Of a DNA stretch of 64,000 nt, positions 19,601 through 35,413 are shown in pieces. How positions within the stretch are numbered: position 1 is the stretch's first letter; each line of letters starts with the position of its first letter. Location: assembly GCF_000143415.4 (NCBI RefSeq), contig NW_003314328.1, positions 249,241-313,240 on the forward strand, given 5' to 3'. Origin of the DNA: Selaginella moellendorffii. Lineage: Eukaryota > Plantae > Lycopodiophyta. Made by a program: the position numbers and the translations under genes. Below the pieces are notes generated by a model. The model was not told the origin of the DNA. It ran no database searches and saw nothing but the letters and a program-made list of their open reading frames with translations.

Positions 19601-21116
19601 ACGTTGTTAAGCTGTGTCAATTTCAATATATTTTGTGTCACCCTTCCAGGAAGAATACTGGCATTATTGCCAGTCGAGCCTCGACTTGGCAAGATGCTCA
19701 TAATGGGATCCATCTTCCGCTGCCTAGACCCTGTTCTAACAATTGCTGCCGGTTTAGCTGCTCGTGATCCTTTCATTATGCCAATGGACAAGAGAAATGT
19801 GAGTAAACTTGTGCTCTAAAACTCCGGCGTCTAACATACCATCCAACTTCAACAGCTAGCAGATCAAGCCAAATACGATTTTGCTGGTCGGGAAGCCAGC
19901 GATCATATAGGCCTCGTTCGAGCCTTTGAAGGGTGGGAAGCCGCAATGAGCAACCAGGTGGCGTCTTCATATTGTTGGAAGAACTTCCTATCAATGCAAA
20001 CATTGCTAGGAATGAGTTCTCTCCGGAAGCAATTTATAGGGCTCTTGACAACGGCAGGGCTTATCACGGATGACCTGGGATTTTTCAACAGGTATAGTCA
20101 AGACCCGGTTGTCTTAAGGGCTGTCATCTGCTCGGGTTTGTTCCCTGGAGTTGCCTCCGTGATGGTAAGTGTGTATTTTCTATTTTCAAAGTTCTCTAAG
20201 CTTGTCTATTTGAATGTTTGAGCAGAAAAAACAAAAGTCTGTGTTGTATAAAACCATCGAGGATGGCCAAGTTTTGCTTAGTGCTGTAAGTGGGATTTTG
20301 TCCTGTTTTTCTACCTCTAACTTGTCATTTTGTTCGTAGAGTTCGGTAAACTCCAGGGACTTCAATCCTAAAAATCCCTGGCTAATGTACAGCGAGAAGA
20401 TCAAAATGTCAAGCGTGATGGTCCGTGATTCAACCTGCATTTCAGATTCAACGCTTTTGCTGTTTGGAGGCAAATTGATCGATGGCCACGCGGTATGCTC
20501 TCTTGGATTTTCTTTTACCTTCTTCTCACTTCGATACTGCTGCTAGCCTGGACACATTCTTATGCAAGGGAGCTACTTGGAGTTCTTCATGAAAGTAGAC
20601 GTAGCGAACACTGTCATGAGACTTCGCCAGGAGATGGACAAACTAATCCTCCGAAAGGTGAGCTCTGTCTCAAACTCGACACTCCTCTCACTTTTCTCTC
20701 ACTCGCAGCTGGCTAATCCCTCCATGGACATCTACACGGAGAACAAGGAGCTCGTGGACGCTGCCTTCGAGCTCATGCGAGGGGACGACTGCTCGGGCAG
20801 CTTCGTCTTTGGCCGGGCCACCAAAGGCAGCGGCTTCTCCAAAGGCTCGGCGGAGCTCCAAGACAAAGGCACTCCAGACACCAAAGGAATTCTCCAAACT
20901 TTGGTCCAGCGAGCAGGCTTTGCGGTTCCAACGTACCAGACGAGATCGTCGGGGTCTCAGTTCATATCGTGCGTGGTTGTCCGAGGCAAGAAATTTATTG
21001 GCGAGCCCGCCGAGTCGAAGAAGCAAGCCGAGAAGAACGCCGCCGCCATGGCCGCCGAGTGGCTCACGAGCTTACCAAGGATGCAAGACGTTCTCTCGGC
21101 AGGCAAATATTTTTGA
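16656..21116 (+). CDS. DExH-box RNA helicase (DHX36-like, plant DExH3/DExH5 group) with C-terminal dsRBD; multi-exon; start uncertain
   Basis: [43 protein letters not shown] and QRRGRAGR motifs; HA2/OB region; dsRBD ([11 protein letters not shown]...[10 protein letters not shown]). Confidence 0.95.
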
Positions 21117-21310
21117 CGTGATAGATCCTAGCTATACTAAAAACTATGGAAGCTCCGCGACTCCATGGACAATAGTTTTCCCATGGACATTAGAGGACAA
21201 TAGGTTGTCCAGAGAGAATGTAACATATTCTCTTAACGGATATCGCTACTTTTTAAAACCCTTCTATAAAGCCTTGTTTTGGTGTTCTAAGTTGCGAGCT
21301 CTAGGGTTTA

Positions 21311-23534
21311 ATGCAGCGAATGGCGTTGCCGCTGTGGAGCGCTACCGGCAACGCGCGAATGCCACTGGCGCTGCCTGGCGCGCATCTCCTGGCGGATTAT
21401 GGCTCCTTGCGCGCTCCTGGCCGAGGTATTTGTGAGGATTGCTCGATTGTTTTGAGAATGCGGCTTGCGCAGCGTCCAGGAGCTTGAGCATCCTGGCGGC
21501 AATAGCGCACGACACCTATGAGGAGCCGAAGAAGTCTTTCGAGGCTCGCGTCAAGGAGGAGGTGTCTATCGATTTGAATCCGCCGCGCGGGACAAGGGAT
21601 TTCGCCCCGCCGCTGATGCTGCTGAGGAACTGGCTGTTCTCGCATTTTAAAGAGGTATGCCAAGCTACACGATAGAATGCTTATTATTTTTTCTTTTTTC
21701 TTCTCTCGCGCTTCCAGGTCTCAAGATTATTTGGATTTGAGGAGGTGGACTTTCCGGTGGTGGAGTCGGAAGCTCTATACATCAGAAAAGCTGGAGAAGA
21801 GATTACACAGCAGGTATGAAGCGCTACATTCTTATCTTTTAGCTTTTCCTTGCGCTCTTTCTGTTGGTTTCAGCTCTATAATTTTGAAGACAAATCTGGG
21901 CGCAGACTATGCTTGCGACCAGAAATTACGCCGTCGATAGCAAGGCTTATCATCCAAAAGGGGTGTGTATCTAACTCTCTTATTTCTCATCTCGTGTTGC
22001 AGTTGTGAGGTTGTTTTGCATGAATATAAAGCCGCATGCTGTACTGATATGAATGTATGGAGGCAAGTGTTTGTTCTGCTTTTGTGTTTAGCTAGCATTC
22101 AGTTCCTGAAGATGAGATTGATGCATTTGACGTCTTCTGCAGGAAATCGCTCGTTTTCCCTCTGCGATGGTTTACGATTGGCCAGTGCTGGCGTTATGAG
22201 AGAATGACGAAGGGAAGAAGAAGAGAACATTATCAATGGAACATGGACATATTTGGGGTGCCTGGCGTTGAGGTAGAAACTTGTTTTGAATGTTGGAGTT
22301 ACAGATCGTTGTGCCCGCAGGCAGAAGCTGAACTCCTTGCAGCTATTGTCACTTTATTCACTAGCATGGGGTTCACCGCAAATGATGTGCGGATACGTGT
22401 CTCTAATCGTAAGGTCAGACCCGAGATTTTTTTTTGTTTTTTATCTGACGATAAACTGACAGGTGCTCCAAGCTGTTTTAGATCGATATTCTGTTCCACA
22501 GGACAAATTCAACAGTGTATGTGTAGTTGTAGATAAGGTAGGGAACTTTTTCTTTCTTTTTATCCCCCTCTTTCCGAGATCTCTAATAGACTTCATGCAG
22601 CACTTTTGTGTCTTCTAGATCAGCAAGATCTCCAAAGAGGAAGTCGACCAACAACTCATGGACCTGGGACTCTCTTCCACGGCTATCAATGGAATTAGAC
22701 ATGCTATACTACTTAAAAACCTTGATGATATTCAAGGTAAGAAGTTTGTGTTTTGTAAAGTTTTTTACATTTCGTTTTCACTCTTGTTTTTTTCGTAACA
22801 GAATTAATTGGGTCTTCAAGCGAGGCATTTTTGGAAATGAAGAAGTTGTTTGCTTTGTCAAAAGCTTATGGCTACGACGAGTGGCTAGTTGTAGATTTGG
22901 GAATAGTGCGGGGACTGTCATACTACACGGGTATCGTATTTGAGGTCTGTTCGGGTTATATTGTTTTCTCTACTGCTTACACCAACTTTCTAGGCATTTG
23001 ATACGCAAGGGAAATTTCGTGCAATCTGTGGTGGTGGTCGATACGATAAGCTTATTTCAAATTTTGGAGGCCCTTCGATACCCGCCTGCGGATTTGGTTT
23101 TGGGGATGCAGTTATTGTAGATGTAAGATTTGGCTTCTTGCTAACTTGACAAAGTAAGTTTTTGTTGCTTTCCAGCTTTTAAACGAATGCAATCTATCGC
23201 CAGTTCTCGGACACGAGGTTGACGACGTTGTGTTCGTCTTGGATGAGGAGCTCCGCTGTCATGCGTGCAACATTGTGTCGCGGCTGCGCTCGGCTGGACG
23301 TACTGTTGATATGATTTTAGAAAACAAAAAACTGAAATGGTATGTTTTCCTGTGTCCTTTCCGGAGTTCTCATGGTTGGTATGCAGGGTATTCAATTATG
23401 CATCAAGAATAGATGCAAAACGCATGATTCTCTTGGGCATAAGAGAGTGGGAAGAGGGAAATGTTCGCGTGAAAGATCTAGTTACGAGAGAGGAGACCGA
23501 CGTAAAGGTGGCTGAACTGGTAAGAATGTTCTAA
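21311..23534 (+). CDS. Histidyl-tRNA synthetase, chloroplast/mitochondrial; multi-exon
   Basis: Transit-like N-terminus; [46 protein letters not shown] and GGGRYD motifs; anticodon-binding domain. Telo-box TAGGGTTT lies just upstream. Confidence 0.95.
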
Positions 23535-23567
23535 TCCTTGTCGAGGCCTAATACTTCCATGTTGCAG

Positions 23568-24150
23568 GTGCCAAGAGTTCCCAAAGAGGTTGGTCTATAT
23601 AGGCCGAAACATCTCAACATTTTTACTCGTTTTGCAGGTGCAGCGTGGTCAGGGTAAACTCCCTGACAAGGAACGCAATCTTCGTTATTTACATCCCGAC
23701 GAGGTGAAATTGGTTGATGCCTCTGGAAGATATCCGGAAGAGTATGAAGTAGGATTTCCTAGTCGTGGCATTCTGGAGGCTTTTGTGGACGAGTGCAAGC
23801 AGAAGCATGCCGAATTCAAACGCAGGCGCCGGGGAGACCCTGCTCCGGGTAAGTCCCGTCTTCTGAAAATATGCGTACTGAAATTTCCTTGTGCAGGGCA
23901 CCTTAAGTACGTTCTAAGGGAGATGAACCTTGAAGACGTTGATCTCGAAGATTTGACAATAGATGACGCCATGAATCTGTGGGTGAAAAACTCGGGCGGT
24001 ATTATTTGGGAGGATGCATATCAGTTGATACACGATCATAAGCTCTCAATCTCCCACATACTGGACATGGATGTTTTTAAAGGACAAGGGAAGCTGGCTG
24101 CCTTGAAAACAAGACGAGAACCGAACATTCCCAACTATCTTGACGACTAA
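23568..24150 (+). CDS. Unknown ~160-aa coding region, probably an in-frame spliced C-terminal extension of HisRS
   Basis: Exons 23568-23588, 23638-23848 and 23897-24150. Introns of 48-49 nt (GT-AG) keep frame from the HisRS donor at 23520. There is little room for an independent promoter. Confidence 0.6.
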
Positions 24151-24408
24151 ATACTGTACGTCTTTCATTGTTTCCTGACCCCGTGAAAAGTTGGCTCTTC
24201 GCTCTTTCAGAAACAACGGATGCTGTGAGTTTACGTGATCTTGTACATTGTAGGCAACGAAATCTGGTAATTGAAGCTTTCTTTGGTGACTTTATCGAGT
24301 TTTCATCTACAAACAAGCCTCTCAGGTACCTAGCAAGAAAATAGCCAGCCAGCACTTTGCTACAAGCCGGGAAGCTTTGTCAATAATCAACCCTACGACC
24401 AACCAGGT

Positions 24409-26025
24409 TCAGCAGCATTTCCAGGCAGACGCAGAAGCTAAGACCTTTCCTTGGAAACCGAGCAGCAGGCTTCCGTCGTCCTTGACGAGGTCAAATCCCC
24501 TGGTCTTGTTATTACCGGCCTTCTCGAAGTTGAACAGGCCGAGCGCAAGCTTCTCGCACATGTCACTGAGTTTGGAGCAGCACAGGCCGGCGTGACTCAT
24601 CCACAGGTTCCATTTCTCCAGCCGCTGGTGCTCCAAATTTCCAGCGAGCAGCTCTTCGACCTCGGGCTTCCATACCAGCTGTTCAACTTTGTCTGCTTCC
24701 TTCAGGGAGCATTCCTCTGAAGCAGCAACACACTCTGCCAGTGCCGTGTAGTAGTCCAAGCCTTCTCGGAAGCGTTCGATGAACGAAGGCTGTGGCTCCA
24801 TCTCCTGCTCGACAAGCAACACTATCTTCGGGTGGGAAGCTCGGATGGAATCCAGTGCCTCGGCAACAGGTACCAACTTGTGAAGTCCGAACACAAAGTT
24901 GACGACGAGCACCTCGTGCACCTTAAGGCCCATGTCGGACAAGCTCAACGGACTTCCGGACCGTGTTAGCACGCCACAGAACTCAAACTCCGCGCATCCG
25001 GCATTCTTGGGATGGTCCCGAGCCAGCTCTCTCAAGCTCTCCAAGGCGAAGTAGAGTGCATGCTGGCGGGTGCTGGTCAGAGTTATTCGAATCTTGATCG
25101 GCCTGGGGAGCTTCTGCTCGAGGGTGGAGGCTACGAAGGATGACCACTGGCCCCCGAAGGAAGAGTTCATTGAGGGCGAGTTGGCTGCTTCGGACAGATC
25201 GAGGATGTGCACGCATTCCTCGGACTCGATGGCCTCGGCGATGGCCTGGTTGGCGATGAAGTGTGCACACTTGAGCAGAGTGGAGGTGTCATACAGGCTC
25301 TTGCAAGCAGCAATCCGCTCGACGACCTCCGTCGCATCCGTCGAAGCGGGAGCTGGAGTGGAACTCCGTGCTTTCCTCTTGGACAGCCTCTCCGCGAGGA
25401 TATCCCTGAAGAGGAGGCCGATTCGATAAGCTGGAGGTTGGAGCTTATGGAACTGTTGATTCTGATGGTGCTCCTGTTGTTGCAGGAAAACTTGGTGGTG
25501 GTGGTGATCATTGAGCCGCGCCAATATCGACTGGGCGAGTTCGTCCTGACCGCTCTCGCAGGCCTCTGCCGCATGCAGCAACAACCTGCTCGGAAACGCT
25601 CCGGAATTCGAGCTTAAGACGTGCTGTTGTAACGGATGCCCCGGTTGGGCATTCGGTGGAGACAGCCTCGCCACCTTGCTCGACGGGTGTTGAAGCTCCT
25701 GCTGCTCTCTCTTGAGGCTCGGCGGCAGCGGCTGCGGCCTCAACAGGACGTGCTCGTCCACGTATGGTATCCGTGAAGCCTGCCGTTTACCAGCTTGTTG
25801 CAACTCTCGCTCCTGCTGCTGCTGGAGGAGTTGCAAAGGGCTGGGACCTGGATTCTCGACAAACAGCCCGGGGTGGAGAGCCCTTGGTGAAGAAGCTCGC
25901 ATGAAGCTGGGAGCTTGTCCGAACAAGTTGGGCATGTGCTGCTGGTGCTGCTCATCTTGAAGCATTCCAAGTAAGAACGGTTCCCTGTGCTGCTGCTGGT
26001 GCTCCAGACCAATCTGAAGATTATG

Positions 26026-26056
<31 letters not shown>

Positions 26057-26583
26057 CACAAGGAATTCATAGCCAGGGGGTCTTGAAACTGCATGGGATG
26101 GGGGTGGTGGAACAGAGGAGCTCCCGATGATACCAACGGTAGTGTCCTCCGTGTAAAGCTCTCGAGATGAGCAAGATGCGGGGGAAGCGAGCTGGTTGAC
26201 GAGGACGAGGAGAGCTGCTGTTGCTGCTCCTGCTTTACCATCATCATCACCTGCTGCTGCCATGGTGGAGGAGGCGGAATTACGTTCACATCTGCTGCCC
26301 CTGCGGCTGCCGCGGAACCGCTGAAAGGCTCTTCAAACAGCCACCGTATGATAGACGGATCAGGTGCTGGAGCTGCTGGTGGTACTCCAGGTGAAGGGCA
26401 ACTCCCAAGCAACTCGCTCTCAAGCTCTTCCAGCTTTTGCTTCTCGGGGAGCAAGTGTTGCTGCTGGTGGAGATGGTGGACAAGCAACTCGTCCTGCTGG
26501 GCTCCGACCACGTCTTGGAGCAGCCACTGATCGCTCCTGCCTTGGTGCTGCTGATGGAGAAGTTCCTGCGGAGGCTGCTGTTG

Positions 26584-26621
<38 letters not shown>

Positions 26622-27438
26622 ATCCACCGTAATTCTCCATCTGGCGAATTCCTTGGCCAGAGTAGAAGAGCGACAGTCCATAACCACTCGACGCTGCTGC
26701 CACGGCCTGCTCCAATTCATCCTGTAGATCCGCCGAGGACGACGACTGCGCAAACGAGGAAGATATCTGCTGCTGCTGCCGCTGCTGCTGCTGCTCCTGG
26801 TGATGATTCCCTCTGGACTTCACCTTGGCAGCATCGGTGGTGCTATTGTTGCAATCCGACGAGGAAGAGGAGGAGGCTCCTGCCTTCTTGGTATTGTTCC
26901 GGATGGCCGAGGAGGAAGAGGCCGAGCCGAGCGCGCGAGAATTGTTGGGGCTTGGGCTGCGAAGATCCAGAACGGAAGTTGGCTCTCCGGCGAATCCACC
27001 ACCGGCGGTAGTGCTGCTAATCACTCCTGTTGAATCTATCGCTAACAACTGTTGGTTGTGGTTGTAGTGCTGGTGGTGGTGGTGGAAGTGTTCCCGCTCT
27101 GGCAGCTGCTGTCCAGTCCTCGCAGCAGCACCAGCAGCAGTGGCAGTGGCAGTGGCGACTTCCCAGCTGCTGTTGCTGTTGCTGCCGGTGATATTGTTGC
27201 TGCTCAGCGCAGCTTTCAAGGACTTGTTGCTGCTCAAGAACACCGCAGCGTGGCTGTGGCTATGGCTGCTACCGCTGCTGCTGCTACTGGTGGTGGTGGT
27301 GGTGGCGGTGGAGCTCAGGAGCCCATTGAGGCAGATTTGCTCCTCCTGCTGGCACCTCTCGTAGAGCTCCTGCTGCTGCTGCTGGTGAAAGACGGGAAAC
27401 GACGTTCCATGGTGTTGGCCAGAGAGCATTCCATACAT
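24409..27438 (-). CDS. HAM: GRAS transcription factor, HAM/SCL6 subfamily, intronless, ~1009 aa
   Basis: EPTSVLD motif, polyQ/S N-terminus, AQSILARLN, VHILD, PKIVLLVEQE and a terminal SAW motif; miR171 site present. First ATG is at 27438 (the ORF track starts at a TTG). Confidence 0.93.
25508..25528 (-). promoter_or_regulatory. miR171 target site
   Basis: mRNA GATATTGGCGCGGCTCAATGA is complementary to miR171 UGAUUGAGCCGCGCCAAUAUC with one mismatch. Confidence 0.9.
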
Positions 27439-31843: not shown

Positions 31844-33417
31844 TTAGACCGCCCGGTTGTCGAATCCCACCCATTGCTTCTTCTCGGCATCGAAGAGATT
31901 GCACTGCGTTAGGATGGTGGTCATGAGCGGAAACCCAAACACGGCCTTATTGAGGTGGCGGTCCCAGTTTTGGAGCAGCGATGCGTGCCCGGCTCGCAAG
32001 TTATAACTTGGAATCTTGGTGGAAAGGTGGTGAGGAATGTGGACACTGATGTCGTGACACAGGAAATCAATCCTGTGAAAACCCAAAGTGAGCCCAAAGT
32101 TCGGAGGAAATCCCGAGTTATACATACCATGCAGGGTATTCGCAGTGAACAGTTCCAGCAAGTTGGGCTCCCACGGCGTTCCACTCGCGGTTCTGCTTGA
32201 ATGGGATGTGTGGAGCCGTGTGGTGGACGAGGGTGAAAGTGCTCATCCAGAAGTGGAAGCCCAGCCATGGGAGCAGCCACCACTTGACGAAACCAACGGG
32301 CCCTTGGGTCACCAACAGGGGCAGCAAAACCAAAAGCCCGAAAGCGTAGCAAGCCGCAATGCTCGTCTGAAGAAAACAGGCATTGTCCGTCAACTTTTCT
32401 CAAAAGATGGATAGATGTCTAACCTTGACTTTGGCGTGCTCCTGGGGGCGGAACTTGTTGAGATCGAAATGCCAGAAGAGCCAGTGTCCGATGGAGGCCA
32501 TCCACCAGAGAGGACCCATTGTTGCACGCATCATCGCCTGGCCAATCCTGTCCGCATTGTCAAACTGGTGTGGCCGGAATGGCTGCCATGCCGTGTCCAT
32601 AATCAGCCTGCACATTCGCAGGGAGAAGAATCACGTTAGCATTGAATGCGGGAGAACAAACACAGAAAAAGATCCCCAGAGGATCCTGGAAGAAACGCGA
32701 GAAGCTTACTTGTTGGTGTGTGCATGGTGAGTGTTGTGCTTGATTCTCCACGGCTCGAACGGGAAGACGAGTGGAGTCATGACCGCATTGCCGACGATAT
32801 CATTCACGAGCTGGGATTTGGAGAAGGAGTTATGGCCGCAGTCGTGACCGATGACAAAGAGCCCAGTGGCGGCGGTCCCCAAGAACGCGTAGATGAAAGG
32901 GTAGAGATACCACGGAGCTACGGTCAGGGCTGCGTATCCCGTGGCCAGAGCCGAGATCGTGATCGCCACAGTCTTCCATGCCTTGAAATCATCCACTTCG
33001 AACACCTGATCACAATTGCAAATAAGTTTCTCTTTGATGATCTTTGTTTACCTCCTTTGGGAGCGTCTTGACAACATCGTTCAACACCATGCCGGCAGGA
33101 ACCTTCGGAAGATCAAACAAGAAGTGTCATTAGAAACTTTTCTAGCAATCACTTACTGGCTCGCCCATCTGTGTGAATCCCGGAGTCAAGACGATCTCCC
33201 TCTCGGCTGCTTGATCGCTGGCGATTACTCCAGCCGTGATCACATTGAGGCAAAGCCGGAGTCTCGCCTGAAGGACACACACAATGGATTGGAAATACTA
33301 AGGTCAATCTACCTGGCGACGAGGAAATGGAACCAAGACTCTCGCCGGAATCGCACTGCGTGGCCTGTCGACGCGGATGGAAGCCAGAGCGATGCTGCTG
33401 CTACTTGCAGCCGCCAT
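31844..33417 (-). CDS. FAD6: Plastid omega-6 fatty acid desaturase, copy 1
   Basis: His boxes HDCGH, HNTHH and HIPHH; transit peptide MAAASSSSIAL; short introns. Confidence 0.93.
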
Positions 33418-33807: not shown

Positions 33808-35413
33808 ATGGCGGCTGCAAGTAGCAGCAGCATCGCTCTGGCTTCCATCCGTATCAGTGCTATTCCGGCAAGAGGCTTGGTTCCATTTCCTCGTCGCAAG
33901 GTACCTTAGTATAGCTCTTCCAATCCAAAGTTTCCCAACTTCTTCAGGCGACACTCCGGCTTTGCCTCGATGTGATCACGGCTGGAGCAATCGCCCGCGA
34001 TCAAGCAGCCGAGAGGAAGGTCGTCATGACTCCGGGATTCACACAGATGGGCGAGCCAGTAAGTGATTTCAATTGATCATCCAAATTATCAGTTCTAGAA
34101 AAGTTTCTAATGATACTTCTTGCTTGATCTTCCGAAGGTTCCTGCCGGCATGGTGTTGAACGACGTTGTCAAGACGCTCCCAAAGGAGGTAAACAAAGAT
34201 CATCAAAAACCTTGGAGCTAAAGGTGTGATCAGGTGTTTGAAGTGGATGATTTCAAGGCATGGAAAACTGTGGCCATCACGGTGTCGGCCCTGGTTACTG
34301 GATACGCAGCCCTGGCCGTAGCTCCATGGTATCTCTACCCTTTTATCTACGCGTTCCTGGGCACCGCCGCCACTGGGCTCTTTGTCATCGGTCACGACTG
34401 CGGCCATAACTCCTTCTCCAAATCCCAGCTCGTGAATGATATCGTCGGCAATGCGGTCATGACTCCACTCGTCTTCCCGTTCGAGCCGTGGAGAATCAAG
34501 CACAACACTCACCATGCACACACCAACAAGTAAGCTTCTCGCGTTTCTTCCAGGATCCTCTGGGGATCTTTCAAACCTTTGGATCGTTTTCTGTGTTTTT
34601 TTCTCCCGCATTCAATGCTAACGTGATTCTTCTCCCTGCGATTGTGCAGGCTGATTATGGACACGGCATGGCAGCCATTCCGGCCACACCAGTTTGACAA
34701 TGCGGACAGGATTGGCCAGGCGATGATGCGTGCAACAATGGGTCCTCTCTGGTGGATGGCCTCCATCGGACACTGGCTCTTCTGGCATTTCGATCTCAAC
34801 AAGTTCCGCCCCCAGGAGCATGCCAAAGTCAAGGTAATATTATCTATCTATCATCTTTTTTAGAAAGTTGACGGCTTGCCTTCTTCAGACGAGCATTGCG
34901 GCTTGCTACGCTTTTGGGTTTTTGGTTTTGCTGCCCCTGTTGGTGACCCAAGGGCCCGTTGGTTTCGTCAAATGGTGGCTGCTCCCATGGCTGGGCTTCC
35001 ACTTCTGGATGAGCACCTTCACCCTCGTCCACCACACGGCTCCACACATCCCCTTCAAGCAGAACCGCGAGTGGAACGCCGTGGGAGCTCAACTTGCTGG
35101 AACTGTTCACTGCGAATACCCCGCATGGTACGTAAACACATCCTCATTTCTCGAGAATCTCCTACAAACTTTGGGTTTTTACCACAGGATCGATTTCCTG
35201 TGCCACGACATTAGCGTCCACATTCCTCACCACCTTTCCACCAAGATCCCAAGTTACAACTTGCGAGCCGGGCACGCATCGCTGCTCCAGAACTGGGACT
35301 GCCACCTCAACAAGGCCGTGTTTGGGGTTCCGCTCATGACCACCATCCTGACGCAATGCAATCTCTTCGACGCAGAGAAGAAGCAATGGGTGGGATTCGA
35401 CAACCGGGCCTGA
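33808..35413 (+). CDS. FAD6: Plastid omega-6 fatty acid desaturase, copy 2
   Basis: Same His boxes and exon structure; near-identical to copy 1 in inverted orientation. Confidence 0.93.

Follow-up and report, generated by a model that had tools for sequence, protein, structure and literature searches.

On balance, our analysis of the window (a 64,000-nucleotide stretch of Selaginella moellendorffii DNA) tips towards a single gene at positions 21311–24150, predicted to encode an organelle-type HisRS that carries a lineage-restricted C-terminal appendage of ~160 aa contributed by three extra exons. The same arrangement is present in the public annotation. Over 23 kb, the scaffold GL377632.1 (GCA_000143415.2) matches the window with 100% identity, and GenBank places on it a single gene at window positions 21320–24150 whose 647-aa product carries Pfam domains of HisRS only. 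Summed from the second ATG (21320), our exon chain amounts to 1944 nt, that is 647 codons plus the stop, equal to the GenBank product; the GenBank model is identical to the fused chain of HisRS and extension, microexon included. Since GenBank already draws it, the fused model is not new. The GenBank entry is itself a sequence-only prediction and is no independent proof of splicing, and in the literature on HisRS in Selaginella we found no paper discussing the 21311–24150 gene. The original prediction, made from the DNA letters, had described a HisRS spliced to an unrecognized C-terminal domain; we regard this fused reading as partly supported and as already embodied in the public annotation, with fused expression being predicted.

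The HisRS core (21311–23519, + strand) is composed of 12 GT-AG exons with a total of 1467 nt, which form 489 codons without a stop and end in ...VKVAEL. Translation could start at the ATG at 21311 or at the second ATG at 21320. The 11 introns of the core measure 47, 63, 60, 180, 48, 49, 81, 65, 49, 53 and 47 nt, so that the modal intron size of the gene is 47–49 nt. PF13393, PF00587 and PF03129 are recorded on the annotated product, as is appropriate for a class IIa HisRS. The last exon of the core matches PF03129 (HGTP anticodon-binding domain), the PDB matches are to HisRS structures only, and the catalytic motif 2/3 regions are intact, with GGGRYD and GFGFG read directly from the sequence. 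The product of the first exon is presequence-like: it is basic, with a pI of 11.5, many Ala, Leu and Arg residues and a single acidic one.

The enzyme had originally been labelled bacterial-type, and this label did not hold. In a PDB search with the motif-2 exon, the one exon on which the comparison rests, the best match was to trypanosomatid HisRS (2e-17), followed by archaeal HisRS (7.5e-10), and bacterial enzymes scored between 5e-4 and 8e-3. Because trypanosomatid and archaeal structures outscore the bacterial ones on this exon, the Selaginella enzyme appears to be an archaeal/eukaryote-like HisRS. The organellar HisRS of Arabidopsis, At3g46100, is termed 'archaebacterial-like' by Akashi et al. 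(1998) and is listed as Chloro-Mito (PMC13308715). Like At3g46100, the Selaginella core is devoid of the HAL-like N-terminal domain that is a feature of plant cytosolic HisRS (PMC7564348) and has a presequence-like region at its N-terminus instead; as in enzymes of this kind, its closest solved structures are eukaryotic and archaeal, not bacterial. Unlike At3g46100, to which it is likened by type and not by alignment, the Selaginella model has ~160 residues beyond the anticodon-binding domain.

The codons for ...VAEL end at 23519 and are followed at 23520 by a strong GTAAGA donor, exactly where the original prediction had placed it. Intron 1 (23520–23567, + strand, 48 nt, donor CTG/GTAAGA) contains two CTAAT branch-like motifs and precedes a microexon of 21 nt (23568–23588, + strand) that encodes VPRVPKE. 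Intron 2 (23589–23637, + strand, 49 nt) has a weaker donor (GAG/GTTGGT, with an unusual T at +3) and the best acceptor in the region. Extension exon A (23638–23848, + strand) has 211 nt, corresponding to 70 codons plus 1 nt. Intron 3 (23849–23896, + strand, 48 nt, donor GTAAGT) is stop-free and in frame, such that its retention would add 16 residues and cause no truncation; both its T content and its codon score are intron-like. Extension exon B (23897–24150, + strand, 254 nt) supplies 83 codons and the stop TAA at 24148–24150. When the sequence was re-read, this chain of two short introns, a microexon and two further exons proved to be in frame up to the stop, as had been claimed. Skipping of the microexon through an intron at 23520–23637 (118 nt), which pairs the best donor with the best acceptor, would likewise preserve the frame. 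A TATA-like CTATATAGG is located at 23594–23602 within intron 2, ~35 nt upstream of exon A. The first in-frame ATG of a transcript begun at CTATATAGG would be the Met codon at 23923. In an exact-product look-up, the ATG-started ORFs at 23923 and 23337 and the product of the neighbouring GRAS gene from its first ATG were not on record.

The GTA AGA hexanucleotide has a double role: it forms the intron 1 donor and it encodes Val-Arg of ...VAELVRMF*, the C-terminus that results, as originally described, when intron 1 is retained (stop TAA, 23532–23534). Translated with the retained intron, the last exon aligns with S. aureus HisRS and ends no more than two residues from the C-terminus of that enzyme, and the Pfam match to the anticodon-binding domain has reached position 87 of 94 by VAEL. 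Judged by this alignment, the retained-intron form is a complete enzyme of canonical length. In an mRNA that retains intron 1 and has introns 2 and 3 spliced, the junctions would lie 55 nt and ~315 nt past the stop. In plants, introns in the 3' UTR that lie more than ~50 nt after the stop mark an mRNA for decay. By this rule the intron-1-retaining mRNA is a likely NMD target and is probably degraded, which makes a regulated two-isoform switch conjecture; intron 1 retention as such a switch, also part of the original prediction, is speculation.

Several tests bear on whether the extension is coding or a product of chance. On the + strand, an open stretch of 204 codons lies in the 874-nt gap that separates the retained-intron stop from the stop codon of the convergent GRAS gene. 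In first-order Markov simulations of this gap, at least 186 open codons were obtained in 12–16 of 20000 runs, which corresponds to a chance of ~7e-4. Splice sites were scored with a position-weight matrix derived from the 11 HisRS introns and applied to all sites in 23480–24160. The claimed donors rank 1, 3 and 5 among the 39 GT dinucleotides of this region and the claimed acceptors 1, 2 and 5 among its 48 AG dinucleotides, and the scores of all three introns fall inside the range of the 11 HisRS introns. T makes up 33–37% of the claimed introns and 23–24% of the extension exons, the same contrast as in the HisRS core (33–52% in introns, 26% in exons). The codon log-odds are positive in the claimed frame of exons A and B and negative in introns 1–3. 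If stop codons are excluded, the extension scores 0.055, which falls inside the range of coding sequence (0.10 ± 0.13), and non-coding open stretches score −0.09 ± 0.11; without stops, codon usage separates coding sequence weakly in this genome, and ~10% of non-coding open stretches score as high. The order GC1 > GC3 > GC2 is found in the extension exons as in real exons here. Combined, these tests constitute good, not conclusive, evidence that the extension exons are real.

Relatives of the extension were sought exon by exon or with the stop-free stretch 23638–24147 (170 aa, with intron 3 read through). Neither exon A, exon B nor the 170-aa stretch matched a Pfam or NCBIfam family at E ≤ 1, the best E-value against the PDB was 0.39, and the profiles of known aaRS appended domains (WHEP, EMAPII, GST, HAL-like) gave no match to the extension. 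A word search with the 170-aa stretch returned nothing among proteins of 94–298 aa in a collection of 5.8 billion sequences. Exhaustive HMMER comparison with 1.84 billion representative proteins produced one match (P0001, 1529 aa) and no true homologue: P0001 is a bacterial surface protein, and we rejected it because its score is summed over seven near-identical repeats. In this search a fused protein may hide in a 50%-identity cluster that is represented by a plain HisRS; the annotated 647-aa protein is missing among the representatives, which indicates that such hiding can occur. Two queries of the ESM Atlas gave no usable match and the language-model recognition score was low. Rfam had no match to the extension region, and phage tblastn and a scan of the region for bacterial promoters and terminators found nothing. 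There are no direct or inverted repeats in the extension and no second copy of it in the window. To the extent that such searches can tell, the extension is a true orphan for which not even a paralogue was found, and the statement in the original prediction that the ~160-aa domain is unrecognizable stands.

AlphaFold2, run without an alignment, gave pLDDT values of 46 and 53 for two models of the extension; at these values the predicted structures are indicative only. The product of exon A is basic, rich in Pro and charged residues and predicted to be mostly disordered, followed by a long helix that ends in KRRRRG. The exon B product is acidic (pI 4.9) and is predicted, at low confidence, to be all-helical. 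The models thus suggest an extension in two parts, ~50 aa of disordered basic sequence and a helical region of ~100 aa whose exon B portion is acidic. The extension contains two copies of the motif V-x-[R/K]-G-Q-G-K-L, namely VQRGQGKL at the beginning of exon A (23644–23661) and VFKGQGKL near the end of exon B (24075–24098). The copies use different codons for each of the five GQGKL residues, and with a pairwise BLASTP E-value of 0.049 their similarity may be due to chance.

An unlikely but substantial alternative is that two genes have been merged. HisRS would then end with VAELVRMF* (23534), and an orphan gene of ~164 aa would start at the ATG in intron 1 (23559–23561, + strand) and use introns 2 and 3. 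Its promoter would reside inside the 3' exons of HisRS, and the intron 1 splice would be unused or would give rise to a minor read-through chimera. The ATG, overlooked in the original prediction, is indeed in frame with the microexon (MLQ/VPRVPKE...), the retained-intron product already possesses the canonical C-terminus described above, the spacing of genes is very tight at this locus (195 nt upstream of HisRS), and ab initio predictors are prone to joining neighbouring ORFs on the same strand. However, the HisRS stop and this ATG are only 24 nt apart, such that the 3' UTR and poly(A) site of one gene and the promoter of the other could be accommodated only by full overlap. The start context is weak (T at −3 and T at +4), the gene would depend on intron 2 with its weak GTT donor, and the 5.8-billion-sequence collection holds no protein of this sequence in the 94–298-aa range. 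Moreover, any HisRS transcripts that extend over the region should be spliced at the strong sites of intron 1 anyway. On the + strand after 23500, poly(A)-signal-like hexamers occur only at 24335 and 24382. Since there is none between the retained-intron stop and 24334, HisRS transcripts probably span the extension; the consensus 48-nt intron 1 should consequently be spliced, giving the fusion. The compactness of the region, with 195 nt between the helicase stop and the HisRS ATG, nevertheless makes overlapping transcription units plausible.

We consider it quite unlikely that no functional protein is translated from the extension and that 23535–24150 is a 3' UTR or spacer with a long open frame, be it a de novo ORF of recent origin or a remnant that has decayed, into which the gene predictor and the original prediction both extended the HisRS model. 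The complete orphan status and the low recognition and pLDDT scores would fit such a region, its codon usage score is matched by about a tenth of real non-coding open stretches, and at the per-locus chance given above the 3' flanks of ~22,000 genes should contain ~15 ORFs of this kind. Chance would, however, also have to provide three intron-sized GT-AG intervals with top-ranking sites, the right phases and an intron-like T content. The frame would stay open without splicing of intron 3, which nevertheless resembles an intron, the order of GC content over codon positions is that of real exons, and the product has a protein-like composition with predicted helices. A fragment of a transposable element or pseudogene is extremely unlikely. 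A match to a transposable element, which the original prediction had named as speaking against the fusion, was sought through repeats, through copies in the window and among the 1.84 billion representative proteins and was not found; the lack of a second copy, of repeats and of an Rfam match argues that the extension is not a transposable element.

According to the single-gene reading, which we prefer, S. moellendorffii would possess a HisRS from the archaeal/eukaryote-like clade to which Arabidopsis owes its dual-targeted organellar enzyme. The GTA AGA codons at the end of the ancestral coding sequence would be used as a strong splice donor, and splicing of intron 1, whose use we infer, would append in frame a Pro/Lys-rich, probably disordered linker of ~50 aa, followed by ~100 aa of acidic, helical sequence. 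Frame-preserving introns of 48, 49 and 48 nt fit the modal intron size of the HisRS gene and count in favour of the fusion. Counted against it are the lack of relatives, the low recognition score and pLDDT, the weak discrimination by codon usage, the atypical GTT donor and the in-frame ATG three codons upstream of the intron 1 acceptor. Because its folded part is net acidic and has no known fold, the tail would serve as a protein–protein or regulatory appendage, not a catalytic or tRNA-binding one. The retained-intron form would be a minor, decay-prone by-product.

Lineage-specific additions to aaRSs include the WHEP, EMAPII and GST domains, the HAL-like domain of plant cytosolic HisRS and the WHEP insertion of plant AsnRS (PMC7564348). 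Similar to these, the Selaginella tail would be a non-catalytic addition, made in one lineage to a synthetase whose core is complete and attached through a flexible linker. It differs from them in being C-terminal, in being placed on an organelle-type enzyme and in matching no family; whereas the HAL-like and WHEP additions of plants are conserved across land plants, the tail has so far been found in one species only. The locus also resembles conjoined or read-through fusions, in that an enzyme of canonical length contributes its last sense codons as the donor and the acceptor lies three codons past the in-frame ATG of the downstream ORF. Unlike in such fusions, the downstream ORF is without a free-standing homologue and separate transcripts are hypothetical here.

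A further reading sees in the tail an adaptor, specific to Selaginella, through which HisRS would be suited to organelles that import almost all of their tRNAs, with a tail-less isoform produced by retention of intron 1. We think this very unlikely. As an adaptor, the tail may bind an import component or escort cytosolic tRNA-His, and the tail-less isoform would serve a different compartment or state. The co-import of pre-LysRS and tRNA-Lys in yeast is the model for this idea. Selaginella mitochondria encode no tRNAs, and the plastids encode about ten and import about forty (PMC13578239, PMC11573648). Nothing links the tail to tRNA handling.

Should the single-gene reading be true, the locus would present a young, species- or genus-restricted domain on an essential organellar synthetase, in a lineage whose organelles have lost most of their tRNA genes. 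It would be a compact case of domain capture, in which ancestral stop-proximal codons were turned into a splice donor, and a candidate for a non-canonical synthetase function. If it is not true, the reference annotation contains a concrete error, and the case would caution that ab initio gene prediction and reading from sequence alone lead to the same extension.

The locus is in nuclear plant DNA whose introns are very short, and the genes that flank HisRS are closely packed. Upstream and on the same strand lies a DEAH/dsRBD helicase gene (1157 aa), the stop of which is 195 nt from the HisRS start (21116–21311), a very tight fit for the 3' UTR of one gene together with the promoter and 5' UTR of the next. 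Downstream, an intergenic gap of 258 nt (24151–24408) is common to the HisRS locus and the convergent GRAS gene (24409–27438, − strand, stop at 24409–24411), which is annotated with 980 aa and is 100% identical to SELMODRAFT_424420. The N-terminal half of the GRAS protein is very long and rich in Gln, Ser and His. Within the length range searched, its closest relatives besides itself matched at 1e-21 or weaker (P0003, Cannabis RAM1-like, 29% identity), which indicates that the GRAS gene is divergent. Further downstream, two fatty-acid desaturase genes are arranged head to head at 31844–33417 (− strand, 404 aa) and 33808–35413 (+ strand, 399 aa). They are ~88.6% identical at the DNA level over ~1.78 kb and hence represent an inverted duplicate pair.
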